From contig PDIP01000077.1 in NCBI GenBank assembly GCA_002811645.1, positions 97,086 to 161,085 of the forward strand: DNA of 64,000 nt. The letters are read 5' to 3'. This document shows, one piece after another, positions 9,118 through 49,986 of the stretch. Numbering within the stretch: position 1 is the first letter of the stretch; each line of letters opens with the position of its first letter. A program made the position numbers and the translations under genes. Below the pieces are notes generated by a model, which did not search any database, had not been told where the DNA came from, and worked only from the letters and a program-made list of their open reading frames with translations. Origin of the DNA: Corallochytrium limacisporum Hawaii. Its lineage: Eukaryota; Protista; Pluriformea.

Positions 9118-12100
9118 TCAATTGAACATATCATTGCGGGCCAAACCGTTTCCGGTACCGTCCACACTGCCGTTCATGTATGATGCCACAGAAGGAACCA
9201 CCGTGACATCGCCACCGGCTGCCGCATCGTCTCCATTAAACAGAGGGTTTGCGTATTCCTTGGTCGAAGTCTTGAACAGAGGGTTCTCATCTGCACGCCA
9301 GCGGGCATTGGCACGCTCTGCCTCAAACTTGGCCCACTCACGGCGGTCCATGATCACTCCGTAGACCTTGAAAGCAATGATGGCCAACAAACCGATGAGC
9401 AGGGTAATGCCACCAGCAATTACCGGAATCTGCACTTCGGGCTTCTCGATTACTCGCGTTGACGTTACGAGCTCAGGGCATTCGTCGGCGTTTTCAAATG
9501 TAGTGGCACAGAGACGAGGGGCATATTCGCGATAGCGACACACACCAGTACCGCACCACAGGCACTCATCATCATTTGTGCAATCCTCGCAATTATCATG
9601 GTCACCACAGCCGGAACCGGGGCAGTCTGGCAAACCATTAGCCTCAGCTATGTCCTGGTTGCAAATGCCGCAGTCGTCGCCTTCGTAGCCAAGATCGCAG
9701 TTGCAGGTGCCGTCACAGCCGCAGGTGCCCTTGCCAGAGCATTCCTCACCGTTTGTACCGATCGTACAGGTGGTGTCCACACAACTGCAGTCATTTACGG
9801 ACTTGTTCGGATCGGCTTTGAACCCTTCATCACACTCACACACAGAGCAGGTGCAGCTACCATTGCCGGAGCACTCTCGCGCAAGATTATCCTTCGGGCA
9901 GAGACCCTCCAGACAAGTGCAAGTAGTGGGGTCGGTATAGTAAGACTCAGTAATGGGTAGGTCGCATTCGCATTCACCGCAGCGGAAGGTATTGGTAGAG
10001 TCGTAGCCAATGATGCAGGTACCATTGTCGTAGGGGTGGCTGCCAGTGCAATTTCCAAGGTTGTTAATGCAGTTGCTCTCCGCAACGGCAATCTCACATC
10101 CACAGGCAGGGCCCGTAAATCCTTCGTCACACTCGCACGCACCACAGTCGCCGCTACATTCGCCTCTGCCGGAGCAAATAAGACCGTTGGAACCAATGGG
10201 ACAAGCACCAATACGGCATTCACAGGCATCGCCTGTGTAGCCGGGCGGGCACGTGCATGTTCCACACTCTCCAGGGGTGCTAGTGTTGCAGGAACCGACT
10301 CCTCCACACTCTTGATCAAAACTGTCCTTCGGGCACACGGTAGTGTCAGGGCAGGCGCAAGATGGAGCTAGGAAGCCCTCATCACAGGTGCACTCGCCAC
10401 AATTGCAACTACCATTGCCGGCGCAGTTGAAGGGGCAAGGGGCGGTGCTGCAGGAGCAGTCATCGCCAGTATAGTCCGCGTCGCAGATGCATTCGCCGCA
10501 GTCACATGTTCCGTTGTTGGAGCATTCTTCGTCAGCGTCATTCGTGGGGCACGCGCCATCTGCACCCGTGGGACAGCGGCAGTTGGGATCGGCGTCAAAG
10601 CCGTCCTTGGATGCATAGATACCCTGGCACTCACAGGTACCACAGTTGCAAACGCCACCGTTGTTCTCCTCATTGCAACCGCCATCACAGAAAAGGGCAC
10701 ACTCGCACGCATCACCTTCCCATCCAGCTTCACACTCGCAGAACGGCTCACAGATGTCAATGGAATCAACGGCATTATTGCATGTGCCGTGGCCGTTGCA
10801 TTCCACAGATTCGTGCATTGGGCAGTTGGCTGCCGGGCTATCGCTACAAAGACATTTAGATTCGCTGGTAAAGCCAGCGCTGCAGTTGCATTCGCCGCAC
10901 TCGCAGACACCGTTACCATTGCAGATGCCACCGTTATCATCGAGGCAGCCCTCAATGGTGGAACAAGCGCAGTTGTCGCCACCAACAATGTCAGTGTCTT
11001 TCTCCCAGCCAACGTCACATTCGCAGGCTCCGCATACGCATGTACCACGACCAGAACAGACCAAGCCATTGTCTGGATCGATACATTCGGAGTTGTCGCC
11101 TGATCCAGTGTTGCAGGCGCAGTCGACTCCTTCATATCCATCTTCACAGACGCACAGACCACAGTCTGAGTCAGTGCCAGAGCCGACGGTACCGTCATCA
11201 TCGCATGTGCGCAGAGACAGGCCAGCTCCCGCACAGTCACATGCATCCAGCAGACTTACATCGATGGTCACATCGCTGAAACCCAGGAAGGAAATCACGA
11301 TCGAACCATCAGTCTGAGGAGACTCATCGTTCCACTCAAGCACAATGTTCACAGTGCGACTTTCTCCGATGGGCACATTGTCGTAGCGACTGGGAGCAAT
11401 ATTGCTGATAAATCCAGCATAGTCACCATCCTGGACCTTGGGGACAATGGTTCCAGCGATTTCATTGTAGGCAGACTCAATAACAGCAAGAATGTTGGAA
11501 GAGTCCGTGGAAATCTCACCAACGGATCCGAAGGAGATGGTGTCAGCAAAATCCTGGTACTTGTCAGATGCGTCGGTTCCGACGGCAAAAATGGGGACAA
11601 TGTTTTGCTGGACAAGGGCTTCTGCTACCTGTCCGATGGATGGAGTGCGCTTGGTAAGGGAGGCAGAGTTGATCAGGTCACCCTCACCATTGGGTGCGTA
11701 ACAGGTGGCGGTACTGCGGTCGAAGATGGCATTTGCAGGATCGTCAGGTAGCTCCGCATCGTGACTGAGATGGAAGGTAGCATCGGTGGCCAACAGCAGA
11801 ATGTTGCGGCGATCGGCACCGCTCCAGCCACCACACATCACACCCTGCATGAGGGCTTCCAGTTGTGATTCGCTGACATCACCACCGTCACGCAGAGAAG
11901 CGTCAGATAGTGATCGAGCGAAGGCATCAGCATTCGTACTGAAGGTACCGTCCATGTGACGGGAGCCGGGACGGTAGACGTAGTCAAAGTCCCGACCGAA
12001 CGGTTCGATGGGTTTATCAACATGGGAAGCCAAGCTGAGGTAGGCGCACTCGCTACCACCGCCAGGCACATAAGTACCACCGCTGCAGAGTCCGTTTAAG

Positions 12101-12561
12101 AAATCAGTCAGATCGTTACCAAGGGCCACCACGGCGTCTTGATCATCACCCATACTATAACTCATGTCGAAGAGGTACAAGAAATTAATGGGCTTATGCG
12201 TGGGTGTGATAACGATAGGTACAGTCAAAGGCTCATCTTTCCGTAGCGATACCTGCACTGATGTGGGTGCGACGTCACCGTAAGTGGCCCCATCGGTGCT
12301 ACTGTCAATGCTACTGGAGGGATTATACCACTGATTGGAGGCGCACGTACCCTGGACGTCCTTGCAGGTGGTATCTCCCGCACACCAGCCGCACAAGTCA
12401 TCGCTTACGATGCACTCATCACAGGTCTGACGAGCTGCACAAATCTCGGCAGGGGTCTGGGCAGAGATCTGGCTACTGCTCAGGGTAAGCAGTGCAAGTA
12501 GACCGGCCAAACCAAGACTACCAAGTGTCTGCCAACCAAAATTTTGCTGTGACTTAGCCAT
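9118..12561 (-). CDS. Integrin beta subunit with an extended EGF stalk
   Basis: Signal peptide; PSI domain (C..RQTCDECI....CGWC); betaI/VWA domain with MIDAS FDMSYSMGDD, ESQLEALMQ, LLATDATFH and NIVPIFAV; about 12 Cys-rich integrin-EGF repeats; TM helix; tail KVYGVIMDRREWAKFEAERANARW..ENPLF..ANPLF. Confidence 0.96.
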   Translation of the reverse strand: MAKSQQNFGWQTLGSLGLAGLLALLTLSSSQISAQTPAEICAARQTCDECIVSDDLCGWCAGDTTCKDVQGTCASNQWYNPSSSIDSSTDGATYGDVAPTSVQVSLRKDEPLTVPIVITPTHKPINFLYLFDMSYSMGDDQDAVVALGNDLTDFLNGLCSGGTYVPGGGSECAYLSLASHVDKPIEPFGRDFDYVYRPGSRHMDGTFSTNADAFARSLSDASLRDGGDVSESQLEALMQGVMCGGWSGADRRNILLLATDATFHLSHDAELPDDPANAIFDRSTATCYAPNGEGDLINSASLTKRTPSIGQVAEALVQQNIVPIFAVGTDASDKYQDFADTISFGSVGEISTDSSNILAVIESAYNEIAGTIVPKVQDGDYAGFISNIAPSRYDNVPIGESRTVNIVLEWNDESPQTDGSIVISFLGFSDVTIDVSLLDACDCAGAGLSLRTCDDDGTVGSGTDSDCGLCVCEDGYEGVDCACNTGSGDNSECIDPDNGLVCSGRGTCVCGACECDVGWEKDTDIVGGDNCACSTIEGCLDDNGGICNGNGVCECGECNCSAGFTSESKCLCSDSPAANCPMHESVECNGHGTCNNAVDSIDICEPFCECEAGWEGDACECALFCDGGCNEENNGGVCNCGTCECQGIYASKDGFDADPNCRCPTGADGACPTNDADEECSNNGTCDCGECICDADYTGDDCSCSTAPCPFNCAGNGSCNCGECTCDEGFLAPSCACPDTTVCPKDSFDQECGGVGSCNTSTPGECGTCTCPPGYTGDACECRIGACPIGSNGLICSGRGECSGDCGACECDEGFTGPACGCEIAVAESNCINNLGNCTGSHPYDNGTCIIGYDSTNTFRCGECECDLPITESYYTDPTTCTCLEGLCPKDNLARECSGNGSCTCSVCECDEGFKADPNKSVNDCSCVDTTCTIGTNGEECSGKGTCGCDGTCNCDLGYEGDDCGICNQDIAEANGLPDCPGSGCGDHDNCEDCTNDDECLWCGTGVCRYREYAPRLCATTFENADECPELVTSTRVIEKPEVQIPVIAGGITLLIGLLAIIAFKVYGVIMDRREWAKFEAERANARWRADENPLFKTSTKEYANPLFNGDDAAAGGDVTVVPSVASYMNGSVDGTGNGLARNDMFN

Positions 12562-15500
12562 TGCGTTTGAATATTTATGTAGAAGAAGTCTGATTCTCTT
12601 TCTTCTTCTTCTCCGTTGCTGTCAATAAATTCTTTAAGATTGGTTCATAATGGGCAAGCCGAGCCCCAGTCAACACAGATCCCTTTGAATGCTAGATGTA
12701 AGCTATTGTGTGTAACGTACCAAATGTTCCGAGCAGATTCTGAGATTTGTACACTATAATACACGCACACTGTTGTATACAGACAAAACACTGTTGTGCT
12801 TGACACAATGCAAATATAAATTTCATGAATAGGATCAATGACATACCTGTTGATTCTCTCGTACCATTAGTGATCTCTGTATTGGCTCAGAGGATGACTG
12901 TTGGTGTCAAGGTATTGGTTACCATCTGGAACAATATAACAATCAACTTCAAGGCGAGTTCTCCACAGCCTAGTTGGAACCCACTCGGACGGTTCTTTCT
13001 CTTTCCTTTACACCCCCGCACATTGCAACACTCCTCTGCCCTGCTCCCTTGGCACGACGGCGTTGGGTACGTGCCGTGCCGTCCGTCAGTCAAAAGCGGA
13101 AAGTTATATCTCAAAACTTGGGAGTGCTGACAAGTTCGGGTCAAAAGCGATAAGCCAACTTGCTGGCGAAGACACTCCGTTTGGGACTGTGTCGTTGTAA
13201 GGGCTGCTGTCCATCCAATCGCAGCAAGGTACAGTTGGAATTGCTACACAAATTCTTTCCCCCATATCGTGCTCCCAACGTAACTGGCTGGCAGAAGTCT
13301 CTGGACTTTGATGGAAAGCAACGAAACTGCACTGTGTGCAGGCGGCCTCATTTTGACAATGTCTCGACTGCTGCAGTGCTATGAACTGCTTCGTGGGTAT
13401 CACAACACCATGGACCCTAATTTGATACCGAATGCGCCGCCATCCATCGATGTACCCTAGACTTCACCTCAGACACGTCAGGCGGAGAGACCACAAGATA
13501 GCTCACCCTAGCCTGCCACCTGGCAACACCAGAGTGCAGCTTTCAGTACAAAAAATACTTCAATAAAAATTCCAAAAATTTAGGAAAGCTGACGGCATGA
13601 TCTTTTCTTGCTGCTCCTGCACGAAAAGGAGGGTTCCCCCCGGGGGGGGGGGGGGAAGAGGGCCCGGTGGGAGAATTTTTTTTTCCCCTTTTTAACGAGT
13701 CTCAAATCCNNNNNNNNNNNNNNNNNNNNNNNNNNNNNNNNNNNNNNNNNNNNNNNNNNNNNNNNNNNNNNNNNNNNNNNNNNNNNNNNNNNNNNNNNNN
13801 NNNNNNNNNNNNNNNNGGAAGAGGGACCGGTGGGAGAATTTTTTTCTCCCCTTTTTAACGAGTCTCAAATCCCGGAGGGTTCTCCGTGAAGAGAGAGGGG
13901 GTTCTTCTATAGAGAGTTTAGGGCCCTCTTCGCCCGGGCGTGGTTGCCATGGGGGTCCACGGAGCGATGGCCTGAGAACTGCAAGTCACACCCCCTGCAG
14001 ACCCCAACGCGCACAGTCTCCAACATGTCCACACGGAAGATTCCGCACCCAAAACCTGCTTGTTAACAGTATTATAGTAGTTGAGTTGTTTTCAAATGTC
14101 GATCTGTTTGCTCACTTGTAAAGAATTCGTCCGTTATACAGTCGGAAGCGGAGGTCCATGATGACGCATTGGCACTGGGACATCAGACGCGGCGGAACAG
14201 AAGTGTGGGTTCTGTACAGTATGCTTTCTGCATCTCCATTGCGACCATCGTCACTTCAGCGTCGTCACAAAAATATACAACACCTTGTGGGATAGAGGAA
14301 ACTCGGACCATGGTCGTTAGATTAACACTTTATTGCTGTTGCTGGCGGAAAAGACAGATTGCTTATCATCTGCACCGCCACCATCCACCATAAAGAACCC
14401 TTTTCAACCCATGCACTCCTCACCAGTCTTTCAACTGCTGAAAATCTCAGGCACGGCCAACGGGTTGAGGCCCCCCTTCCGTGCCGCTCACTGATTGGCT
14501 GCACCGATGAAATTCTGGGAGGCCGGGAGTTCAGGGTTGACAGCGACCCAGTGAGTGAACCCGTGAAATTCGGCTTCGGTACGTGAACCATACCTTTTCT
14601 GTAAGAACAAATTGACGGAAATGCGCCATCCTCGACCATCTCTCCCCGCAATCCCACAGAGTGCACCGGACAAAGATAATGTAGACTTTGCGCAATCTGA
14701 ATGAAGACACTACAATGCTATGCGTCCAAGGAGCTCAACATCTTGCTGACTGTGTTGAAAATTTTCTTTTCATCACCACTATCAACCTCAAATCTCAGGC
14801 AATTCACATTCAGACTGCATCGACTGAAGATAGTATTTTGAGTATTGTGATATGCCTATCTGTGTCGGGCGTAACTATTGCTCCAAGACCATCCTGGAGC
14901 GGGCAATGACTTCATTCATTTTTTTCGTCCGTAGATGCTCGACCATGCCGTGTCGCAGGCGCTGCACTTCCGCTTGTTCGTCAATTCAGCAGTGGGCCCA
15001 CTATAAACTGTGGATGTAGTGCATGAACGCAGCACTCTTCAACCTTGGAACTGTGCGCTGCTGCGCAGTTCATGGGCGGACGAACAGATACACAGATCCA
15101 ACTCCACGCCAATCATAACACAGGGCCCAGCTTAAAGTGAGCCACTGAGCAGTATCAGAAGCAGGAAGCGTGGCTGTGACCGCCTTAAAGGTGCATTCTT
15201 TGGACAATTTTCACCAATTTCATTCAAGCCGCCTCGCTTGGTAAACTATCAACAGCGCGCAGCAAACCTCGCAAGAGCGGGTAGGGTAATGAATGAAAGA
15301 TTTTTCTTTCACGCCCCGAAGGCCTGGTTGCTACGGTGTTCCGCCGATATATTCAGTATGGATAATGGTTGCACTGCCAAAATTTGCGGTGGGCGAACGC
15401 GAAGGACAAAGAAACACACGGACGGAAGAATTTGATCATGGACTTGCTCCACCACAAACGGAATGAAGTTTTAACATCTTTCCTGGGTCAAGGACTCTGG

Positions 15501-16830
15501 GACTTAACTCTTTGCATGCCGAACAAAGATTAGGAAAATCTAATCATGTGCTCGTAGTCCGTTTGAGATAGGAGAGCACGCACCGTATTACACTACAAAT
15601 TTGGAGCGTCCGCGCTGCAATCAATGCCAAAATACCCGCTGTCCGCCAATGAACGGTATCATCATGCGAAACAGAGCACACCGCTGCCAAAGGACGATGG
15701 GTGCTCCTGATGATAATCGTCAGTTGCGAAATCGTGGCCAATATCGGCACCTCCCAATAGCTGATAATGCTTGATTGATAGTACAGGACCTCACATTTGT
15801 GTGCGCAGAGTGGGCATGGCCGGTATGGGCACTTATCATGCGAAGGTGGTCCCCGTTTTCCACCGCTCTTATTTCGCCGACCCAGCTCCTCTCTCTCTGC
15901 CCCCGCCCTCGCCCTGTGCAGGGAGGCTTCATCCCCCGCAGCCCCTACCCTCGTCTCTCGCCTTTGTTGCGGACCCCGCCCCTCCGCAGCACAGTCCTCC
16001 CTCCATGGAGACAAAGGCCACGAAGGTAAGGGGCTCCCGGCGAGGTCCCCCTCTCCGGCCCCCGCCCTTCCGCCGATGGAATGGTTAAGGAAAGAAGGGG
16101 GGGGAAAGCGGTCAAAATTTTTGACCAAGATGCTTGATTGCGAGTGGGTTTAGTGGAGGTTCTGCCGTGCACGATGACCTTGTGTTTCTGAAAAAGAACC
16201 AGTACAGCGGTAGTCAGTGCATGTCTTGCAGAATGCTTCTGTTGCATGTACAATAGCTTATTGGTTGGTGGGTTCATGCCGTGTTTAACGCACACCGTTG
16301 GTGGTACCGAGAAAGCGCTTCGGTATAGTGGGCTGCGAGGGTCAGGGGAACCAATCCGCTGTATGGACTGGTGTGTGGAGCAAGCCAAGATAACAGTATG
16401 ATGAACTTTGGAGAATTGCATCGGCCAATTTTTGCTGTCAGAACCATTGACTAAGAAAGATGAACAGAAAAGCACTTGCTATAGGGAATGTCTGTTCTGC
16501 TGTTGAGTGCGATACTTGTAATAGTGATCTGAAAAACTACATCAAAAGTCGGATCTACACTAAAACAGGTTGGTGGAACATTCTACTTATCATATGTGAG
16601 TAAAGGTGGTAAATACCTCAAAACTTGTGTGAATCAGGGACTGTCGATCGTGTACAGTAGTTTGCTCAAAAATTCATTTCGGGTCCTTGAACAAACGCAG
16701 ACGCATCTGCCTGAGCGTGACCAAAAGATTTCGGAATAAAGTGTGAAATATCCAGATCTTGAGCATAAGATTCTGGTCATAGAAGGGAAAGACTTTGTGG
16801 AACGGTTCGTTTCCAGCACAGCTCGCAAAA
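12562..16830. promoter_or_regulatory. Divergent intergenic region between the integrin beta and alpha start codons (candidate shared regulatory region)
   Basis: About 4.3 kb including one gap, with no credible ORF. Contains G/C-run patches near 13630-13920 and 15880-16110. Confidence 0.5.
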
Positions 16831-19800
16831 ATGCAGTACAGTACGAAGCAGTCTATTACATGGACGGCTCTGTTTCTGTTGGCCGGGAGTGCCGTTGATG
16901 CACAGTATCTTGCCACGAACAGTCTTCCCACCGGTACAATCCCCACAGGTGGTGACGTCAATGCAGACAGTGTGACTACTCTTGCAGGAGGATCTCAGGG
17001 TCTGAACAGTGCTACTCCTGGCTTCGGATACTCTGTCGAGCTTGCTCAGATCTGGGGCTCTTCCGCCGGTAGTCAAGACTTGATTGTTGGTGCTCCTTTC
17101 GAGACCGCCACAGTCAATACCGTAGATTACCAGCGCGGTTCTGTATTGTGGTACGGCAGTAATGGAGATGGCACTTTTGCCTCGGGTGTTGCTTTGAGTC
17201 CTAATTACACAAGGAAAACCTGCGAAACCTGTGAAGAAGAGCATACCCGCTTCGGTCTCAATTTTGCCGCTAACACGATTTCTGGTGACACCTACGGTTC
17301 CGTCTTCTATGGTTCTCAGTACTGCCCGTGTACTGTTATCCACAGCAGTAGCTCTGGTGGTGTAGATGCATCGCCAGACAACGACGAACACTTTGTTCAT
17401 GAGAACTGGTCCTTTGCAATTGGTGAAGTTCCCGTTTCTGGCTGGCGTGGTGAAGGTTTCCGCCACAATCATCTCTACAAAGAATTTTCCGCCGACAACA
17501 GTGTGTCCAGCTACGAGTTGAAGGCCCATGGCTCTACTGTGTATGCCGACCCCAGTCGAAGCTTCTGGATTGTTGGCGACCCTGAGGCTAGCGTTGATGG
17601 TCTGTCCTATGCGGGTTTGGTGTCCATTTTTAACTCAGTGCATTGGAGTACCAACTTCCCGACTCCTATCTGGACCGTGTCCGGTACTCAGTCCGGTGCC
17701 GATTTTGGCTATACTTTGTGCACAGCGGATGTTAATGGCGACGGCAATGATGACATTGTTGTCGGATCTCCCTTGTACTCTAGTTCCAGTGTGCGGAACG
17801 CTGGTCGCGTGGATATTTACCTCGCTGCCAGTTCCAGCTCCTGGTCTACTACTCCAGACTTCACCATAGTCGGCAACAACTCTGGTGATGAGTTCGGCCG
17901 TGCCATCGCTAACTTGGGCGATTTGAACGGTGATGGTGCTGAAGACCTTGCAATTGGTGCTCCGTTTGCTGGTGCTGGTGTAGTCCAAATCTACGCTGGT
18001 AATGACTCTGGCTCTGGAGATGTCGTCTCCCTGTGGCAGAGCATTGAAGGTCTCAACGATGGTGACCAATTCGGTTTCAGCATTAGTCGTGGTGGTTCTG
18101 TCGACAGTGGCTCCAGCGTAGACTGTGCGATTGGTGCACCTGGTGTCGGCTCTGGCGCTGGCAGTGTCTACGTACTTCGTAATGTTGCTGCAACTTCCAT
18201 CACCCTTCAGGCGAATTTGCAGAATCCTGATGGTGTTGACTCGAAGATTGTTGAGGAAGGCACGACCTTGGTTGCCCGCATGGTTGTGCAGAATGACGGT
18301 GTTGTTGACACTGGTGCCTTTGTGGTAAATGTTAGCGTACCTCGTGTCTCCAATGGCGTATGGAATGCTCCCACATCCACATCGGGTCTCTGTTCCCTTG
18401 TGGCCGCCACCAATGGCGCCTCCTGGTCGTGCTCCATCTCAAATGTTGCTGCCGGTGCCACTCTCAACATGGACTTTGTGTACACCTTTGATGCCACCAC
18501 ACGCTACAGTCCTGCTGTGAGCTTTGCCATTGAGCTGGATGCTACCACAGATGTTATTCTAGGATCTACAGATGACTCTTTGACTGTGACCTTGCAGCAG
18601 TCTGCCACGCTTCAGTATACAGGCACTCCTACTCCAGTCATATACAACGACAATGACGACTCAGAGACGGACATTACCATTGGTGAACTTCTAATTCTCA
18701 AGGATGTGCGCAATATTTTGAACTTGGGTATCAGCACTGCCTTTGACGTCAAGTTCGACATTGCGCTACCTGGTGGCTTGACCTTCCGTGAGGTACGCGG
18801 CACTGGTTCCGGTCCAAAACCTCTGTGTTCTGGTCTGACAAGCGTGACCTGCTCTCTGACCTCCCAGCTTGCCAAGGATCAGACCTACTCTGCCCACTCT
18901 GATTATGAATTGGTCTTCTCCACCACCCAGGTGACTTCTCCTACCCTGCAATTGGACATTCGTGCCTTTAGTAGTGGTACTGGCTCGATCACAGAGTCCA
19001 CCAACACCATCAACGTCGCTGTCAGCAGCTCCGAACTGTCTGTTGCCGAGACTGTAGTTGTCTCCAACAACCATCAGGCCGGTGTTTGCTCCGGTAACGA
19101 GCTGGTTGCTGGTTCCACCTTCTCAATGAGTTTCATTGTTGCCAACATTGGAAATGGTGACGCTGCGAATCCGGTATTCTCCCTGGATCTGAACCGTGCC
19201 AACGCTGCTCTGCCTCTTCCTTTCTCCCTTGTTAACGGTGCAATGCCTCGGGTCCGCCTGAGCGACGGAACTACTGTAAACTGTAGCCAGCCTGATGCTG
19301 TGGGGGAACCGTGGGAATTTGACTGTGATCTTAATGGATACACCATTACCGCTGCAACCTCCATTACTATTATGGTTGATGGATACACAGCCGATGACGC
19401 AACTGTTGGTAATCAGCTCACTTTCAGCCTTAGCATTGACGCTCTCGCTGGCGATGGAAGTGACGGCGATAAGATTCGCACTGATGCGGACTCTAATATC
19501 AACGGCAATGGAGTGACAAATGTGGTGACCTGCAAGTACTCTCGTATCCTTGCATCCCTAAGCAATTCGCCTGGAAGCTTGAAGTTCGACCAGCCTTTCA
19601 GTCAGACTTACCGCCTCTACAATCGCGGTCCTTCCACTGTGGATGCCGGAATTGACACGTACACCTTTGATGTGGATTCCACCGTGACCATGGAGGCGCA
19701 GACCGATAGTGAAGACAATTTTGACACCTCTGTCTGCAGCTTTGTAAACGCACAGCAAGTGTCTTGCAATCTGCCCGCTATGGAAGTGAATGAAGGCATC

Positions 19801-21627
19801 AGCTACAGCATTGAGAATATTAGGGCAAATGGTGCTCTGAACGATGGAGATACCGTGACCGTGGGTCTCAACGTTGATGAAGCCTCCCTTGCAACTAATG
19901 GAATTGACCAACTGGTGGACACCACTCGCTCCCTTAGCGTGCAGAAAGCCGTGGACCTGACGCTCTTCTTGACGGTCAACGATTTCGACCCTGTGACTGA
20001 TGCGTCTACTCTCTACGTGACTGCTCGTGTCAGCAATGGTGCGACCGCCATCCAAAGTGGTGATATCACCCTGGATCTGGTTGTTCCTGATGTCCTTAGC
20101 GTCCTTAGTTCCGATCCATTCTGCAATGATGCATACACTGTTGGCTCCAGCGCCAACACGCTTGAAGATACCTGCACCATTACCGGTGGACTTGCTCCCG
20201 GTGCCTACAAAGATTTTATCTGGTCCTACCGTGTCGATTTCCCTGCAGATCTTGACCGTCTGAGTGAGGTGCAGATCGTGCATTCCACTATCACGTCTGC
20301 GGATCCTCAGGGTTCCTCCGTCGAGCTCCGTACCTCAGCCGATGACTTCGAGTTTGAGACCGGCGCTGACCTTGAGGTGATTCTGAGCTCTGTGCCCACA
20401 GCAAACGCTGCCAACAACGAACCGTTCAGTATGTCGGTGCGTATTGGTAACGCTGGCACTGAACCGTGCGCTGATGTCAGTGTTGTCGTCGACCTCGACT
20501 TCGATGAGGGAGCGGTCTACGATACGCTGGTTGACTTCAACGGAGTTGTGGACACCCTTGGAGGTGCTATCACCACCACTCCCACCACTGGCGGAGCTAC
20601 TCTCGACACCATTACCATCACCATCCCATCTCTGGGTGGTGAACAATACGTCGTGGTTGAATTCAAATTTGACATTAGTGTGAACTTTGCCGACGCTGCA
20701 GAACAGGTTGTACTGGTTGCTAGTGCAGATGCTAGCATGACCACCCCTGACACTGACAACTCGAACAACGATGACCTGTTCAGTGTCACTGTTACCGAAT
20801 CCAAGTCTGTCATTGGTCTGTCTATCTCCAATTCCTTTGGACCTGAGCTACAGACCGGTAACACGGGCAACTTTACCATTGTCATGTCGAACTACGGCAT
20901 TGCCGCTGCTAACGATCCCAGCTTTATGGTGGAGGTGCCCGGTGTTGACTTCCCAATTGACTTAGCCGAGCTCCCTGAGAACTGCGGTACGCCGGTACAG
21001 ACCGATGGGCCGACAAGCACTCGTGGTCTGCAAAATCTGATTGATGCTGGAACCTATGATCTGCTGTCCCAGAGCGGCGAGCGCAATGGTACCGATAGTG
21101 ATGACTCCATTTACTACTATCACTTCACGTGCACTCTTGACCCGATTCTTACTGGCAACTCCCGATCCACCCTGATCCGTCTTGGAACCGACTCTCAGCG
21201 TATTGCTCCAGACAATTCCACAGTTGAGATTACTTCGTTTGTCTGGGTAGAGGCCAATGACTCTCGTGATGTCGGTTGGTTCGACGAAACCGGTTGGTCA
21301 GCGTCGGCAGGCGACTATGCCACCCGCATTGCTACCTATCCTGGCCAGAGTGACATTGACAAAGCCTACGATGTCTCCATCCGCTTGAAGCAGGCTGTCA
21401 GCGGTGAGTTTGGCGAGGAGACACAGAGCAAGAACACCCCTTGGTGGGTCCTGTTCCTCATTATCTTTTCTTGTGTCGTCTTCCTCGGTCTGTGCACTTG
21501 GGGACTGAAGAGGGCTGGCTTCTTCAAACGCAAGGCACCCCCGAAGGCTGGTGGTGAGGGTGGTAATGCGGTCGGTCCTGAACCGGTCCAGATGCCTGAG
21601 CCGACTGCTGATGATGATGACTTCTAA
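16831..21627 (+). CDS. Integrin alpha subunit with an extended Ig-like leg and no alphaI domain
   Basis: Signal peptide from the ATG at 16831; FG-GAP repeats (FGYSV..LIVGAP, FGYTL..DVNGDGNDDIVVGSP, FGRAI..DLNGDGAEDLAIGAP, FGFSI..CAIGAP) with Ca2+-binding loops; about 7 beta-sandwich repeats; TM helix; KRAGFFKR motif; acidic C-terminus. Confidence 0.95.
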   Translation: MQYSTKQSITWTALFLLAGSAVDAQYLATNSLPTGTIPTGGDVNADSVTTLAGGSQGLNSATPGFGYSVELAQIWGSSAGSQDLIVGAPFETATVNTVDYQRGSVLWYGSNGDGTFASGVALSPNYTRKTCETCEEEHTRFGLNFAANTISGDTYGSVFYGSQYCPCTVIHSSSSGGVDASPDNDEHFVHENWSFAIGEVPVSGWRGEGFRHNHLYKEFSADNSVSSYELKAHGSTVYADPSRSFWIVGDPEASVDGLSYAGLVSIFNSVHWSTNFPTPIWTVSGTQSGADFGYTLCTADVNGDGNDDIVVGSPLYSSSSVRNAGRVDIYLAASSSSWSTTPDFTIVGNNSGDEFGRAIANLGDLNGDGAEDLAIGAPFAGAGVVQIYAGNDSGSGDVVSLWQSIEGLNDGDQFGFSISRGGSVDSGSSVDCAIGAPGVGSGAGSVYVLRNVAATSITLQANLQNPDGVDSKIVEEGTTLVARMVVQNDGVVDTGAFVVNVSVPRVSNGVWNAPTSTSGLCSLVAATNGASWSCSISNVAAGATLNMDFVYTFDATTRYSPAVSFAIELDATTDVILGSTDDSLTVTLQQSATLQYTGTPTPVIYNDNDDSETDITIGELLILKDVRNILNLGISTAFDVKFDIALPGGLTFREVRGTGSGPKPLCSGLTSVTCSLTSQLAKDQTYSAHSDYELVFSTTQVTSPTLQLDIRAFSSGTGSITESTNTINVAVSSSELSVAETVVVSNNHQAGVCSGNELVAGSTFSMSFIVANIGNGDAANPVFSLDLNRANAALPLPFSLVNGAMPRVRLSDGTTVNCSQPDAVGEPWEFDCDLNGYTITAATSITIMVDGYTADDATVGNQLTFSLSIDALAGDGSDGDKIRTDADSNINGNGVTNVVTCKYSRILASLSNSPGSLKFDQPFSQTYRLYNRGPSTVDAGIDTYTFDVDSTVTMEAQTDSEDNFDTSVCSFVNAQQVSCNLPAMEVNEGISYSIENIRANGALNDGDTVTVGLNVDEASLATNGIDQLVDTTRSLSVQKAVDLTLFLTVNDFDPVTDASTLYVTARVSNGATAIQSGDITLDLVVPDVLSVLSSDPFCNDAYTVGSSANTLEDTCTITGGLAPGAYKDFIWSYRVDFPADLDRLSEVQIVHSTITSADPQGSSVELRTSADDFEFETGADLEVILSSVPTANAANNEPFSMSVRIGNAGTEPCADVSVVVDLDFDEGAVYDTLVDFNGVVDTLGGAITTTPTTGGATLDTITITIPSLGGEQYVVVEFKFDISVNFADAAEQVVLVASADASMTTPDTDNSNNDDLFSVTVTESKSVIGLSISNSFGPELQTGNTGNFTIVMSNYGIAAANDPSFMVEVPGVDFPIDLAELPENCGTPVQTDGPTSTRGLQNLIDAGTYDLLSQSGERNGTDSDDSIYYYHFTCTLDPILTGNSRSTLIRLGTDSQRIAPDNSTVEITSFVWVEANDSRDVGWFDETGWSASAGDYATRIATYPGQSDIDKAYDVSIRLKQAVSGEFGEETQSKNTPWWVLFLIIFSCVVFLGLCTWGLKRAGFFKRKAPPKAGGEGGNAVGPEPVQMPEPTADDDDF

Positions 21628-22574: not shown

Positions 22575-24084
22575 CTTTGCGTGGATTGAATGCTAATCTG
22601 TTCCAAAATTTTGAGTTTACGGCTCCTGGTGAGTCCCGAAATGGAGAAGCTACGCCCGGAAACTCGTGCCCTTTAGTACCAGTGCTGGCCTTCCACACGT
22701 CGAAACCACATCACCATGTCAAGCAAAAGGCCTGGACGCATGCTTGTTGGTATTTCATAAATCAACCATCTCCTGATGGCCAGCACCACAACCTGCCCTG
22801 GCTTACTGAACATGAGAGCGATCGGTCGACCTGTGAGTTTGCTCTCTGGTCGTGCGCGAGAACTGTGTAGGAAAGTTCGGGAGATCAAAGAAGGTTCAAG
22901 GGCGTGTGCCCAGCGCTCGAGTGACCATCCGCTGGTGAACTAAAAATAAACCATTGGATTGGCTATAGTAAATATGCGGTAATTCTGTAGCCTTCCAATC
23001 CACTTCTGCTTATTTTAGCCTTGCACATCCCCACCGGGCCTTCCCGCTTCCTGCGGTACCTGGAGGAAGGGGTGAAAAGGCCGAATAAAATGGAGGATAG
23101 TGACGCAACTTGAGCACTTCGTTCGCTCTCGCCAGTCGCACTCTCTCCCCCTGCGCGGTCCCCCGGTGTCCATTTTCTTTTTGTGGTCTCTCTCGGCGCA
23201 TTCTTTAGGTGTAAGTCCCTCGTCCATCTTCTCCTGTGACCTGTGCTCCTGGGGCCTGGCTGACGGTCGGGGGCCCTTTTCCAAGCCTGAGGAAGGCAAA
23301 TTAATGAAGGCTATCATGGAGACAAGGAAAATAGACTCCGAATACCGTATGCCGCTAGCAATCGAGGAGAGGCGCCCCCCCCTTGCAACCGCGCCCCAAG
23401 GGGGGGGGGGGAGAAGGGTGGGAATCCTGAACGGAGTNNNNNNNNNNNNNCCCCCCCCTTGCAACCCCGCCCCAAGGGGGGGGGGGGGAGAAGGGTGGGA
23501 ATCCTGAACGGAGTACTCGGGTACGCTGTTGTTCAGTACTGAATGTTTGGGGTAGGAGGGGGGGGGGCGATCAAGCGAATGCGGACTCCGTTATACCGTT
23601 TGTACCGCTCGATTTTCCCATTCAGATTTGCGTTCCTATATACCTAGGTATATCGCTATGGAAATAATACGGAGACTAAGAAATCCTATGAAAGACATAG
23701 CAAAGTGGCAAGGATATTGATATACTTGTTTGTTGAAATCATCTCTGTGGACGTTTGCTATTCGCGTGGCCCATTGTTTTTGCGCAGTGTTACTGGTTCG
23801 CCACTGGCTGGCGCTTGGGGGGACCGAACAGGGACGGACGGGGGGCTCCGGGTCTATCCGGTCAAATCGGGTAAACAGTGGGTATATCCGTATTTTCCCG
23901 GGGTGCTGGCGCCATTGAATTGCAGTCTATTGGTTTGCTCGTTTTGTTTCCATGATCGTGATGCTTAGGTATTGTCGACAAAGACTGTATTTACGAGCAC
24001 GGGGTTGGTATGTCAGGACAGATGCAATATGCTGAGTATCGAATAGACGGTAGTTTGCAGGAAAGTCGTCAGCGACGAGACTAC

Positions 24085-27470: not shown

Positions 27471-28001
27471 TTGGGTTGGGCTGTATGTTGAGAGAAACTC
27501 ATTAACAGGCCATTTGTTGTTCACATGTTCGAGGACCACAGGACCAACACCCACATACATACACGCACACACAAACGCAACCCCAGGATAAAACAACACG
27601 GAAAATGATCCAGCCAGAAAGCGGCACGGCAGGGATGGGCCCTCGCTAGGGAAATCCCTTTACCACCACGAGAAATTTCCAAAACATTTGCAACTTCTTG
27701 GCCCCCACCCCACCCCCCAAGCCTCGTTGATTTTACACCGGTGTTGGATATGTCGTCTCTTCGCCCTGGTCCCCTCCCCCCCCCNNNNNNNNNNNNNNNN
27801 NNNNNNNNNNNNNNNNNNNNNNNNNNNNNNNNNNNNNNNNNNNNNNNNNNNNNNNNNNNNNNNNNNNNNNNNNNNNNNNNNNNNNNNNNNNNNNNNNNNN
27901 NNNNNNNNNNNNNNNNNNNNNNNNNNNNNNNNNNNNNNNNNNNNNNNNNNNNNNNNNNNNNNCCTGTTAATGAGTTTCTCTCAACATACAGCCCAACCCA
28001 A
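27471..28001. repeat. 39-bp perfect inverted repeat (arms 27471-27509 and 27963-28001)
   Basis: ttgggttgggctgtatgttgagagaaactcattaacagg and its exact reverse complement, which begins immediately after gap 27785-27962. Confidence 0.85.
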
Positions 28002-38469: not shown

Positions 38470-38541
38470 CGCTGTCTCTCTCTCTCTCNNNNNNNNNNNN
38501 NNNNNNNNNNNNNNNNNNNNNNNNNNNNNNNNNNNNNNNNN

Positions 38542-38602: not shown

Positions 38603-41600
38603 ATCTTCCTCGCCCAGGCGAAAACACACAGCAGCCTCGGTGACGTTCCAAAGGGGGGAGGCCCTGCCCGATTAAAATCCATGTACATATTTTTTGTATT
38701 ATTTGATTCATATTATATTTTTAGGAGATTCCAATGAGAGAACTCATCGGCTAGCTGAGGGGACTAAGAATTCCATTGTCCACACACAACACACCGAGGG
38801 ACTAATTCTATTTTCCACCGAGAACAGACTCCCCATCGCTGTGTTCGCCGCAGCAACTACATATAAAGAAAACGGACAACGCCCTTTATACACACTGATT
38901 GCATGTTTGAAATTGTGATAGTGAAAAGGTCCAGAGACGATTTATCACATCATTTGTCCTCGGTGCCTGTCCACATTGCCATAGCGTAGCTAAAAAATGC
39001 ACTGATGGTGTGGGCTTCGCGACCGCACAACTTTTCCCTTGTGCGCACGCACGACACACACGACCGAAAACGAATGGAAAAAGAAAAAGATAGCCAGAGA
39101 GGGAACAACAACACCGAACAAAGGCGGAAGGCGAAGGCCGGAGCGCGCTGTTTGTATCAGTCAATTCTTAGTCGTGTTGCATATACCGCGTGCTTCGAAT
39201 GCGTGCCATTGATCAACATCCATCAATTGGGTTCCTATTACCCCCTTCCTCGCAATAGGCCGCCTCGCCTACCACCTACCGTCTTCACACTCCGGGTGGC
39301 TCTCGCGGCACCCAAAACCAAAATCTCTCTCTCTCTCCCCTCCCCAAAAACTGCCTTGCCCCGGGAAGGAGGATTTACGGCCATTTGAGAAAAATGAAAC
39401 TCTTAGTGTTCGGGGNNNNNNNNNNNNNNNNNNNNNNNNNNNNNNNNNNNNNNNNNNNNNNNNNNNNNNNNNNNNNNNNNNNNNNNNNNNNNNNNNNNNN
39501 NNNNNNNNNNNNNNNNNNNNNNNNNNNNNNNNNNNNNNNNNNNNNNNNNNNNNNNNNNNNNNNNNNNNNNNNNNNNNNNNNNNNNNNGGGGAGGAGGGCG
39601 GGCGGGCGGCGAAGAGAGTGCGTTTTGTGCTATCAAAAAAATGAAAATAAGTGAGAGGTGTGCGCGCGACACAGAGGGTTGAACGAAAGCACATGTATTG
39701 GGCTGGTCCTGTCCGCAGTGGGCGATGGTGTTATGTGGGTGTTTGCTGCCGGCTTAGAACATGATATTGAATTGTATCCTATTGATAACGCGCCGCAGCC
39801 ATCTAATCCAGAATCAAACACTGATGTTTACAGGTATGGCACAAACCCGTCCGCGCGAGCGCCGAGACACTCCTCGACTGATGGGCGTGCCTGAGTCTTG
39901 CATGGCCATAATGTGATGGTTGCCCTGCAGTGGAGATATACTGGTACAGTAGTAATACTTTAATTATTGTTATCTCTCGCACAACAAACTAATCCATCAC
40001 CCATCTGCCCGGTTAGATGAAATGTTGTAGCCCGGTTTGACCTGCACGCGTTCGCTCGTTCCATCTAGGCCAAACACTATGGACAAACCCAGAAATACGC
40101 GTAAGAATGTCCACTTTGTTATATACCTCTTTTTGGTTTTTCGTCGTCGTATCCCCCCGCACATCTCCAGAAGAACGTGTCTCCGAATCCGAATACTTGT
40201 GTTTGACAACGGTTTGTGCCAGAATTGCCAGCCCGCGAGAAGGTTTGTTACACCCACCGCTCTACCAACGGTCCACATCAATTCATATCAAACGGAGATC
40301 AATACATTGAGTACCAAGATGGAACATTGATCATTCTCCATATTGCAAAAACTACGTCGGAGAAGTGTTCGGTCCACGTTTTCATTTAAATTCCGAAAGA
40401 GGGAGGCAGACACTGGGCACTGATACTATCGATATTTTGGGTTTGATTCCAATATACCAGCGGGGGACAACTTTGGAGATCTACGTGTTTGGAGTTTCTT
40501 CACTCTGTAAGTTTTTTGACAACGTCTGTTCCAGTTTCACAGTTTGAGTTCGGACATGGAAAATACACTGTAATAGCATACAGATCCCAGCAAGGTTTGC
40601 GCCGCATGTGAAACAGCCAGATGACGATGTACAGATATGTAGATGGCAGTACGTAACACATCTGTACAATACCCCGCACGGGGCTATGTAGTCAGTCAGC
40701 TGACGGCCCCTGCGTGAAATTTATCTCAAGCCAGAAACAATCTGACTCGTATGGGTTTTTGTTGCCTGAAGTTCACCTTGAGATGAAATGGTCGTGACGG
40801 CTAGGCAGTCATACTATCTGTGAAATACAGAGTCCGGTTTGGTCTTTAAAGGCAAAGCCCCCGCCCTTATCCCCAGTTTTGTGACATAGGTATATGCGTT
40901 TCGTGGCTATGAATGCCACACCGTGTCCATCCCATCGATGTTGTGCAACAGTTTGATAATTTGATACTTGGGAGGGGGGGGGGTGGGCGGGAGGAGACAA
41001 AAATCACTGTTGCCCAGCGGTGCCAGACCCAAGTTCTATCAGTTTTCGCTCAGCCCACATCTACCATACGCCCGATAAAGCTACGAGATGTCACATACTC
41101 TTCACTATAGCAGCCATCCTGGCATTTGGGTCGCGGGGCTAGGCTTGTATGTCCCAAAGGCACGACAAATTGTACCATTACATTACTACGACAAAGTACA
41201 GTATTTGGTTAACTGTGGTCTGTTGATAAATAGCTGAAATGCCCAATCGACAACGGAAACGGAAGGGAAAATTGGTTGCATGGTGTATATTCAAAGGACA
41301 CATATCCGCGGCGATGGAGGACAGACCCGGGAGGTAATACCCACTTTTCGCCATTGGGGAGTCCACGTCAGTAAGGTAATTGTCTTTGTGGGCCCAGAAA
41401 CGATTGCCTTTTTGTGTTTCTTAAAGGACCGCCCCGTTGTCATTCTTGCCCAATAGCAGTATTGTGGTTACTGTGTGAGGTGATAGAGTGCAGAGATGGC
41501 ATACCAAAACGGTGCGAAGAGATTGATAGCTGTCGCGTAGCGAAGACGAGCTTGTAACACCTGCCGTGCACAAGCGCTCAAGTAGATTAATATCAGGTTG

Positions 41601-47600: not shown

Positions 47601-49986
47601 CGCACACGAAGCGATCTTGATCCCTTGCGGAGTGGGCCAGAGGCCCGCCCCGCGAGGGGGGAGAGGGGTGGGTGGAGAGGCGACGAGAGAGTGGGGGGAG
47701 GGAGAGTGGAGNNNNNNNNNNNNNNNNNNNNNNNNNNNNNNNNNNNNNNNNNNNNNNNNNNNNNNNNNNNNNNNNNNNNNNNNNNNNNNNNNNNNNNNNN
47801 NNNNNNNNNNNNNNNNNNNNNNNNNNNNNNNNNNNNNNNNNNNNNNNNNNNNNNNNNNNNNNNNNNNNNNNNNNNNNNNNNNNNNNNNNNNNNNNNNNNN
47901 NNNNNNNNNNNNGGGGGGGGGGGAATGATGGGGGAAAGTCTGGAAAATGATGGACAACAACAAATTAGGTACACAGATATGAAACGCCAGACCATTGGTG
48001 TAGTGGGATGGAAAAGGTTGCCTCTCAGGACTGTGCATTTGAGCTACAGAGACCAATAAGCCAGGAGAGTTTTATCGACCTTGGTCTGCTCCCGTTCTTG
48101 ATGCCGAACAGAAGCCTGACATATCATGGCCAGAGGATACTCAGGTGCTGGAGCATGGCAATGGATGATGCACTTGGAAACAAATGGACTCGTTACGTAA
48201 GTTGGAAACATCAGAGGGTGCACCATAAACATGAACCTCAGCATGCAAGGAAGAGAATAGTGAAGCACGAAGAGGAACTATAGCGGAATAGAGAATGAAT
48301 AGTAGTTCATTGTGATGCGTTGTGACGACCTGTGTTTTGTTCTACCATCCTTTTTGTCTTCGGTATCGGACTTTCACCTTGAATGGGCACAGATGATCTA
48401 CTGTAAATGCTGAAGCCTAGGATTGTAAAGGGACTGCCGCTGCTCTCGAATTGAAGCAAAAGAACATATTGGAAGGTTAGGTGCAACGTACAGGATGGAT
48501 ATCTTGTGTGGGGTGTGCCACACAACAACTTTTTCACATGCTTAGGTTTTTCTGCGCCTCATGCAATACTGATCTTGGACCAACAAGCTTACCCATTTGG
48601 CCACGATGGGACGGCGTTGGGGGAGAGCCAGGAGACATAGGCCATACCCTTCGGATTTGAAAACTGATCAGCTATGCGCCAGGCCGTGTTGTACCATGCG
48701 GTTTAATTGACCTATCCCTTTGCGTTCTCATCCACATTTGGCTTGAAAACCTAAGGAAACTCCGCAGCCCATCGCTTTCCCCCCCCCTCTTCTTCGCTTT
48801 TCCCCTAGGAGAATTTTGAAACCCCGCTGAAATCCTCCGGTTTTATGACAACGCGCAAGGCGTGTCTTTCTGGGGCAAATATTGCATTTGGCCATACTCA
48901 CTATTCCCCCCCCCTCTCCCTTGCCCTTTTACCCCGCACACCCGCTTCCCAACATCTACAGATGAGTCGAGCACGAAAATCGGCAGCATGGATACAAGAG
49001 AAGGGGTTGCCTGTACCTCCTGTACCCTATGAGGTCAAAACTAATTGAGCATCCATAGTGTGGACCGGAAGCAAGGTACCATCACTGGCCATGTGATGTC
49101 AATATGGACAGTGCAAGCAGATCAATTGGGATGGTTGGAGAGCGAGAGGGAAGAAACCAGGACGAAACACTTGCCCAGGCCGGGAATGCACAAGCGCAAA
49201 TTCCATCAGCTCGCCATAGTAAATAAATGTCGAGTGTTGCGAGCTGAATTTGTCTCTGGTAATTCCCCCACATTCTGACCATTGGAAAGGACTTAGCATG
49301 AGGACACCATGGGATTCCCTTGTCTAAGTTTGGACGTCGCAATTTCTGCTCTCCAGGTGAGACGTTGGCGCTATGCGCCCTTCTGTTCCTGATGTGCACT
49401 ATCAAATATGATCCAACTTGGTCCCATTGCTGTGATCGTAGGAACGCGGGGAGAATTTTGGCTGAGGGGATACCCATCCCTTTCCCCGCCCCGCGGGAAG
49501 CGAGTGAGGGGGAGGGGGGAGGGGGAGAGGGAGAGGGAACCCCCGGAGGGGGGGGAGAGAGAGAGAGGGGAAAAGGTGCGGACTTCTTAGACCTGATGAC
49601 CAAGAGGGTACGGTAGGGCGGAGGTGGGAATGGGGAAAAGGGGCCAAATGAAGCGGAAGAGGGGAAAGGGGGAAAAGGGGGGGGGGGAAGAGGCAGGAGA
49701 TTACATAGAGTACTGCAGGCTTGGTGCCCCAATGGAGGGGAAACAGGGTAGAAACCAAGATTGTTCGGGTTCGCGTATAGCTCTGGCTAAATCCTTAGGG
49801 GACACAGAGGGGGAATGGCAAGGGCCAGTACTTGTCACCACTGACAAGAGTGCATTTGGTGAATGTGGTTTCTGGTATTTAAGTGGAGTCCTTCTCAGTG
49901 ATCCATATGAATGATCAAGGTATGTTAGCTAACCAACAACTTAGTACTCTAGTACAATACCCTATAACACACAACAATAGTACAGT

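Follow-up and report, generated by a model that had tools for sequence, protein, structure and literature searches.

A head-to-head integrin alpha/beta gene pair with a long silent spacer, the probable single integrin receptor locus of Corallochytrium limacisporum

The window studied here is a stretch of 64,000 nt from Corallochytrium limacisporum Hawaii (assembly GCA_002811645.1, contig PDIP01000077.1, positions 97,086–161,085 of the forward strand). All positions given below are counted within it. Two integrin genes lie next to each other in this window and point away from each other. The integrin beta gene is found on the minus strand in positions 9118–12561 and codes for a protein of 1147 aa; the integrin alpha gene is found on the plus strand in positions 16831–21627 and codes for a protein of 1598 aa. 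Each one is a single open reading frame (stop codon included in the coordinates) and has no intron. A previous reading of the letters alone, which we will call the sequence-only reading, had described them as complete divergent neighbours with one frame each, and the Pfam matches, motifs and translations confirm this description. It also placed 4.3 kb between the start codons: the exact distance is 16831 − 12561 − 1 = 4269 nt.

The beta protein starts with a signal peptide which ends near residue 35, followed by a PSI-like cysteine motif (12412–12441, minus strand), both of them read from the translation. The betaI (VWA) domain covers residues 122–370, in positions 11452–12198 of the minus strand, and matches the Pfam Integrin_beta family with an E-value of 2.6e-31. 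An alignment with human beta7 locates the MIDAS motif D-x-S-x-S in positions 12154–12168 (minus strand), with the D-D of the ADMIDAS just after it; the D-x-S-x-S-x-x-D-D, S-E and T-D blocks are all conserved. The stalk is very long and rich in cysteine, with Pfam matches to EGF_2, EGF_integrin and I-EGF_1. At the C-terminal end the transmembrane (TM) helix and the cytoplasmic tail occupy positions 9232–9429 of the minus strand (Integrin_b_cyt, 1.2e-17). In the translation the helix is found in positions 9349–9429, and the tail has two NPLF motifs in positions 9268–9285 and 9232–9249. A phmmer search of PDB sequences aligns residues 39–631 with the ectodomains of beta1, beta2 and beta3; the best match is beta1 (1.9e-52). 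All the features which define an integrin beta subunit are thus found in one protein: the metal sites of the betaI domain, the succession of signal peptide, PSI, hybrid and I-EGF stalk, and a single TM helix with an NPx[Y/F] tail. Its nearest relative in a HMMER search which gave 600 relatives is CAOG_05058 of Capsaspora, with 41% identity (1e-54).

The alpha gene requires a comment on its start. The list of open reading frames begins it at the TTG in position 16795, following a bacterial start rule. The first ATG is found in position 16831, where a typical signal peptide begins (16831–16905, plus strand, from the translation), and this is the start which we have used. The N-terminal third of the protein is an FG-GAP propeller and the remainder is a long leg. 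The best-scoring FG-GAP repeats are found in positions 17704–17946 of the plus strand (Pfam FG-GAP, 1.3e-17). The translation of this region contains two calcium loops with the pattern D-x-N-x-D-G-x-x-D, in positions 17728–17754 and 17920–17946. When it was compared with PDB sequences, the region of residues 278–470, approximately, matched the propeller blades of human alpha5, alpha4, alphaIIb and alphaV, with 1.6e-22 for alpha5. In the leg Pfam gives no match to Integrin_alpha2, which corresponds to the thigh and calf domains; it gives only a weak CARDB match (4.7e-4) which is under the cut-off. The C-terminal region, read from the translation, has a TM helix (21442–21507), then the residues K-R-A and the membrane-proximal motif GFFKR (21517–21531), so that helix and motif together extend over 21442–21531 of the plus strand. 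The motif lies 36 residues before the end of the protein. The propeller with calcium loops and the single TM helix followed by GFFKR identify this protein as an integrin alpha subunit.

The animal heterodimers alpha5beta1, alphaIIbbeta3 and alpha4beta7 share with these two proteins the order of domains, the MIDAS and ADMIDAS sites, the FG-GAP calcium loops, the GFFKR motif and the NPx[F/Y] motifs. There are also differences. The legs are much longer in Corallochytrium, the alpha leg gives no match to Pfam Integrin_alpha2, and both motifs of the beta tail are NPLF instead of NPxY. As far as we know, the alpha and beta genes of animals are scattered and do not form such pairs.

We have searched the whole assembly (24,109,830 bp in 286 contigs) for other integrin genes. 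It contains one Integrin_beta domain, that of the beta gene described here, and a single Integrin_b_cyt tail. The alpha propeller, when used as a query against the genome, matches only itself. A search with a degenerate GFFKR pattern gives 10 sites, which is not above the 14–19 sites obtained with a control pattern; only in the alpha protein of the window is the motif found directly after a TM helix and near the C-terminus. Other proteins with FG-GAP repeats were considered as additional alphas and rejected: they are an ITFG1-like protein, an ITFG2-like protein and an ephrin-receptor-like repeat protein of 1751 aa, none of them with a TM helix plus GFFKR. An open frame of 1281 aa on C15 has a match to FG-GAP_3 and also lacks this combination. 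The proposal that this is a one-receptor locus is therefore supported by the presence in the genome of a single Integrin_beta domain, a single beta tail and a single alpha with TM helix and GFFKR. Since the genome has no other candidates, alpha and beta are mutual partners by elimination, provided that the receptor is heterodimeric like that of animals. The two products would form the only integrin heterodimer of the cell. A prediction of the complex of alpha residues 20–490 with beta residues 95–445 gave a score of 0.00 in two runs, a result which counts neither for nor against the pairing.

At their 3' ends both integrin genes have close neighbours: 196 nt separate the beta stop codon from the end of a gene of the MRJP family, and 113 nt separate the alpha stop codon from the end of an enoyl-CoA hydratase gene. 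The remaining divergent pairs of open frames in the window are 0.2–1.9 kb apart. It is in comparison with these distances that the long 5' spacer of the integrin pair stands out. The spacer contains a GC-rich (59%) and pyrimidine-rich block in positions 15700–16000, approximately. We also considered that the spacer could be a transposon or a repeat, an idea which was rejected: it has no copies elsewhere in the genome and no notable internal repeats.

The limits of the transcribed regions can be estimated from sequencing runs. In two runs with RNA-like coverage, X3 and X4, the contigs cover the beta gene up to positions 12789 and 12799, respectively, and the alpha gene from positions 16600 and 16571; there is nothing in between. 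The DNA runs cover the whole region. Since the coverage of X3 and X4 is confined here to the two genes and their leaders, whereas the DNA runs cover everything, we conclude that X3 and X4 truly represent RNA. The RNA-like contigs which span the two 5' regions show no joints. According to these limits the 5' leader of beta extends over 12562–12799 (minus strand), with one upstream ATG inside it, and the 5' leader of alpha over 16571–16830 (plus strand), with an ATG-TGA start-stop in position 16594. The leaders are thus about 230–260 nt long, and about 3.8 kb between them are silent; the contig ends used here are only proxies for the transcription start sites. This silent spacer, in positions 12800–16570, is single-copy, has zero coverage in both RNA-like runs and is non-coding by all the tests which we have applied.

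The spacer is unusually long for a genome with an average of about 3.2 kb per gene, and it might be asked whether a third gene or a non-coding RNA lies hidden in it, expressed only in conditions that were not sampled; the integrin genes would then not be truly adjacent. Only two RNA-like runs are available for this purpose, in the form of contigs, which lose rare transcripts. However, the evidence from the spacer itself goes in the opposite direction. Its seven largest open frames (99–194 aa) have codon-usage scores between −0.28 and −0.02 per codon, similar to out-of-frame sequence, while held-out genes of the window, used as a reference, score between +0.12 and +0.46 per codon. Five of the open frames were compared with Pfam and none has a match; the spacer has no Rfam match up to E = 1 and no tRNA. 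The lack of coverage occurs in both runs while the flanking genes are covered, and no repeat or transposon copies of the spacer exist elsewhere in the genome. A hidden gene is therefore very improbable, and the claim that no gene lies in between agrees with the Pfam, Rfam and tRNA searches, the codon usage and the absence of RNA-like coverage. The two genes are adjacent, divergent and have no gene between them, which is the definition of head-to-head alpha/beta microsynteny in holozoans.

The spacer is interrupted in the assembly by a gap, in positions 13710–13816, which is filled with N. The sequence-only reading had noted that it might be a misjoin. If the gap had joined two unrelated contigs, the adjacency of the genes would be an artefact of the assembly; the gap is indeed placed between the two genes and no contig spans it. 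The sequences at both sides tell a different story. The same 56-mer is found immediately to the left (13654–13709) and to the right (13817–13872) of the gap, so that gap and flanks occupy 13654–13872. The two copies are identical in 54 of their 56 positions, and this 56-mer is found nowhere else in the 24 Mb genome. A run of poly-G, in positions 13642–13655 approximately, precedes the left copy, and this homopolymer by the gap is a place where several very short contigs accumulate. A DNA contig of run X1, which begins in position 13817, has 12 loose G ahead of it, in agreement with the poly-G to the left of the gap. A genome-unique 56-mer shared by both sides together with a poly-G run is the signature of one locus which has been broken at a homopolymer. 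Most likely there is no misjoin and the gap is a collapsed contig overlap, in which a spurious gap has been inserted; a true tandem duplication of the 56-mer is a possible alternative. If the gap corresponds to an overlap, the true spacer would be about 160 nt shorter than in the scaffold. The DNA runs may be the source of the assembly itself, so this evidence is supportive and does not have the value of an independent long-read proof. A published analysis of the same species also describes a head-to-head pair, although probably from the same assembly. Altogether we consider an artefactual adjacency extremely unlikely. Since the gap falls within the non-coding spacer, no reading frame is affected and neither gene is touched.

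The sequence-only reading had left open whether the linkage of the two genes had already been reported. It had: Grau-Bové et al. 2017 (eLife 6:e26036, PMC5560861) described head-to-head integrin alpha/beta pairs, one in Corallochytrium and four in Capsaspora, and found that the Capsaspora pairs are co-expressed. The same paper gives for C. limacisporum a genome size of 24.1 Mb and 7535 genes, and describes repeats and introns as scarce. Our pair is very probably the one that they published, in which case the linkage is already known. Their description of the Corallochytrium pair takes one sentence and says nothing about the spacer of 4.3 kb, about where the transcripts end or about the gap.

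We have checked three of the four pairs reported in Capsaspora (CAOG_05058, CAOG_01283 and the beta3 locus). Each of the three beta genes has the gene of a large FG-GAP protein as its divergent upstream neighbour, in the arrangement alpha(−)/beta(+), with spacers of 1104, 1368 and 1164 nt from ATG to ATG. Capsaspora resembles Corallochytrium in the divergent orientation, in the absence of a gene between alpha and beta, in having the same beta tail domain and EGF stalk, and in the long legs of the subunits (1717–1922 aa for the alphas and 1056–1192 aa for the betas of Capsaspora). It differs in having four pairs instead of one and introns in its integrin genes, which are absent here, and its spacers of 1104–1368 nt are to be compared with 4269 nt in Corallochytrium, three to four times longer.

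A further case has been found in a Logan contig of 6.4 kb from run SRR33270664 (L015). It contains an intronless beta gene of 1078 aa which is colinear with the beta of the window, with 30% identity over 1141 columns. At a distance of 623 nt, across a spacer with 74% GC, there is a divergent gene, truncated by the end of the contig, which starts with a signal peptide and a first FG-GAP repeat. A tree built on the betaI-plus-hybrid region joins this beta with a Pigoraptor sequence as its sister (support 97/92), inside a clade with CAOG_01283 of Capsaspora (99/99), and in a tblastn search its divergent neighbour matches the alpha which adjoins CAOG_01283 (1e-14). The position in the tree and the match of the neighbour show that the arrangement is also present in a second filasterean-like lineage. 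The comparison of alpha/beta synteny with filastereans has given head-to-head pairs in Capsaspora (L012–L014) and on the Pigoraptor-like contig. It bears out the suggestion that the arrangement might be ancestral: the same topology in three Capsaspora pairs and in the Pigoraptor-like pair indicates that it is old. In the same tree the beta of the window pairs with CAOG_05058 (93/87). Such a grouping would imply that more than one beta lineage existed before the split of Corallochytrium and filastereans, but little weight can be given to it in a tree with long branches and weakly supported deep nodes.

Is the arrangement related to the regulation of the two genes? Both of them are present in both RNA-like assemblies, which consist of contigs and do not give expression levels. 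Between the ends of their transcript contigs there are about 3.8 kb, a distance which falls to about 3.6 kb when the gap and the duplicated 56-mer are discounted. Bidirectional promoters are defined by start sites less than about 1 kb apart, and the contig ends, used as proxies for start sites, lie well beyond this distance. For this reason it is unlikely that the two genes share a compact bidirectional promoter. Collagen IV pairs of animals (PMC5395295) offer a useful comparison: there also two subunits of one complex related to the extracellular matrix are divergent at one locus. They share a short promoter, however, while in Corallochytrium the transcript ends are about 3.6–3.8 kb apart. 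The two genes may share distal elements, or each may have its own promoter in an arrangement which has been inherited.

The second of these possibilities leads to the view that adjacency has been inherited and no longer has a function: each gene would have its own promoter, and the pair would persist because it has not been rearranged in a small genome. The distance of about 3.8 kb between transcript ends is in its favour when compared with 0.6–1.4 kb in the filasterean pairs and 0.2–1.9 kb in the other divergent pairs of open frames in the window. Conservation of synteny among holozoans is rare in general (Grau-Bové et al. 2017, PMC5560861). This rarity may also be turned around: the topology has been kept in at least three paralogous Capsaspora pairs, in the Pigoraptor-like contig and in Corallochytrium, despite an almost total loss of synteny. 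The reported co-expression of the Capsaspora pairs (PMC5560861) and the presence of both Corallochytrium genes in both RNA-like runs also argue against a loss of function. We consider such a loss rather unlikely.

Our preferred interpretation, which we regard with good confidence as probable, is a single integrin receptor locus formed by an inherited head-to-head pair with shared cis-regulation through the spacer. A unicellular holozoan with a compact genome poor in introns would have its sole integrin receptor encoded here, by two genes whose products would pair with each other if the receptor, like those of animals, is heterodimeric. The head-to-head order has presumably been inherited, given that filastereans have the same topology. 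The pairing would most plausibly be kept by cis-regulatory DNA of the spacer which is common to both genes and balances their expression.

Integrins are a textbook case of adhesion machinery of animals which is older than animals themselves. A single alpha/beta pair in one locus, in a relative of animals which can be transfected and is almost free of introns, represents a minimal system. With it one could study how the cell maintains the balance between alpha and beta, and which role an integrin plays in a unicellular organism. As the linkage has been in the literature since 2017, the value of our analysis lies in its confirmation and in details of practical use: alpha and beta are both intact and have no second copy in the genome, the gap does no harm, and the transcript ends delimit about 3.8 kb of silent spacer. 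The spacing of the transcript ends, the Pigoraptor-like pair and the bacterial fusions described below are new with respect to the 2017 report. Further attention should go to the spacer and to the bacterial fusions.

A separate observation concerns Bacteria. The betaI domain of the window gives better scores with a set of bacterial proteins (1e-34 to 1e-27) than with the betas of animals. We have surveyed 80 bacterial loci with a betaI-like domain, using an ad hoc HMM and a Pfam check on five of the fusions described here. In 17 of the 80 loci, mostly from Alphaproteobacteria, an N-terminal FG-GAP propeller and a betaI-like domain are found in one open frame; these 17 fusions may come from a single event. 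An incomplete search of the literature gave no reports of bacterial fusions of FG-GAP and betaI. They provide a separate lead on the origin of the integrin head. In the betaI-plus-hybrid tree the bacterial domains form their own clade (100/99). The direction of transfer between bacteria and eukaryotes cannot be read from a tree of this form, with three separate clusters and no outgroup.

It could be imagined that the partnership of propeller and betaI domain at one locus is older than eukaryotic integrins, that the linkage in holozoans is a remnant of such a single locus, and that the unusually long spacer of Corallochytrium is an elaboration, specific to its lineage, of regulatory DNA common to both genes. 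We consider this quite improbable. If it were true, both head domains could, for example, have been acquired or have descended as one unit. The bacterial proteins, which are of the RTX type, resemble integrins in that both head domains occur together; they differ from them in being secreted and in having no TM helix, tail or EGF stalk. In the fusions RTX repeats are found both between the propeller and the betaI-like domain and after them. In two more of the 80 loci the FG-GAP propeller is found in an adjacent or overlapping open frame.

In an exhaustive HMMER search the betaI region of the window's integrin beta (residues 95–440 of the ORF at 9118–12561, minus strand) matches bacterial betaI-like domains at 1e-34 to 1e-27. 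The matches to animal integrin beta are weaker, 1e-24 or worse; Capsaspora is the only source which outscores the bacterial domains. We surveyed 80 loci in bacterial genome contigs (L028–L107), chosen by the presence of an Integrin_beta-type (betaI-like) domain. In 17 of them the betaI-like open frame also contains RTX repeats and an N-terminal propeller of seven FG-GAP repeats, the repeat of integrin alpha. Examples are found in L074 (6644–11677), L082 (7154–11839), L086 (7106–11464), L101 (6659–11221) and L087 (45–4391). Most hosts of these fusions are Alphaproteobacteria, together with Nitrosovibrio and one Pseudobdellovibrionaceae MAG. A different organization is found in L016/L028: a separate FG-GAP protein gene lies immediately downstream of the betaI-like gene, on the same strand. 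These loci are Rosetta-stone-type evidence that both integrin head domains may act jointly in bacteria as well.

The Capsaspora locus of integrin beta 3 (L014, 10001–22539, KE346362.1) has a divergent alpha with fn2 and PA14 domains; a reverse-transcriptase gene is found just past it. The gene model CAOG_009484 (2354 aa) runs from integrin beta 3, for which other records give 1189–1192 aa, into an LRR/tropomodulin-like part downstream of it, and is therefore probably a merged annotation. An additional head-to-head pair of integrin beta and alpha-like genes is present in a Logan contig from run SRR33270664 (L015, 2–5544): its spacer has 623 nt with 74% GC, its beta gene has no introns and the sister of this beta is a Pigoraptor sequence.

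The genome of Corallochytrium has other FG-GAP proteins, one ITFG2-like (KICSTOR-type; L011, 2165–4216, contig C261), about 9 kb past the end of the window, and one ITFG1-like (L010, 1184–3313). Neither of the two is an integrin alpha.

Over about 2.1 kb of the window (11800–12799 and 16571–17700) the RNA-like contig set X3 differs from the assembly in only one letter and X4 in nine positions: it seems that different strains of the same organism were the source of these transcriptomes. The 5' leader of alpha has a start-stop element, an ATG directly followed by TGA (16594–16599), and the beta leader, too, has one upstream ATG. Besides the gap at 13710–13816 the window has six assembly gaps, in positions 2827–2959, 23438–23450, 27785–27962, 38489–38541, 39416–39587 and 47712–47912; several of these six fall at ORF-poor stretches past 38 kb.
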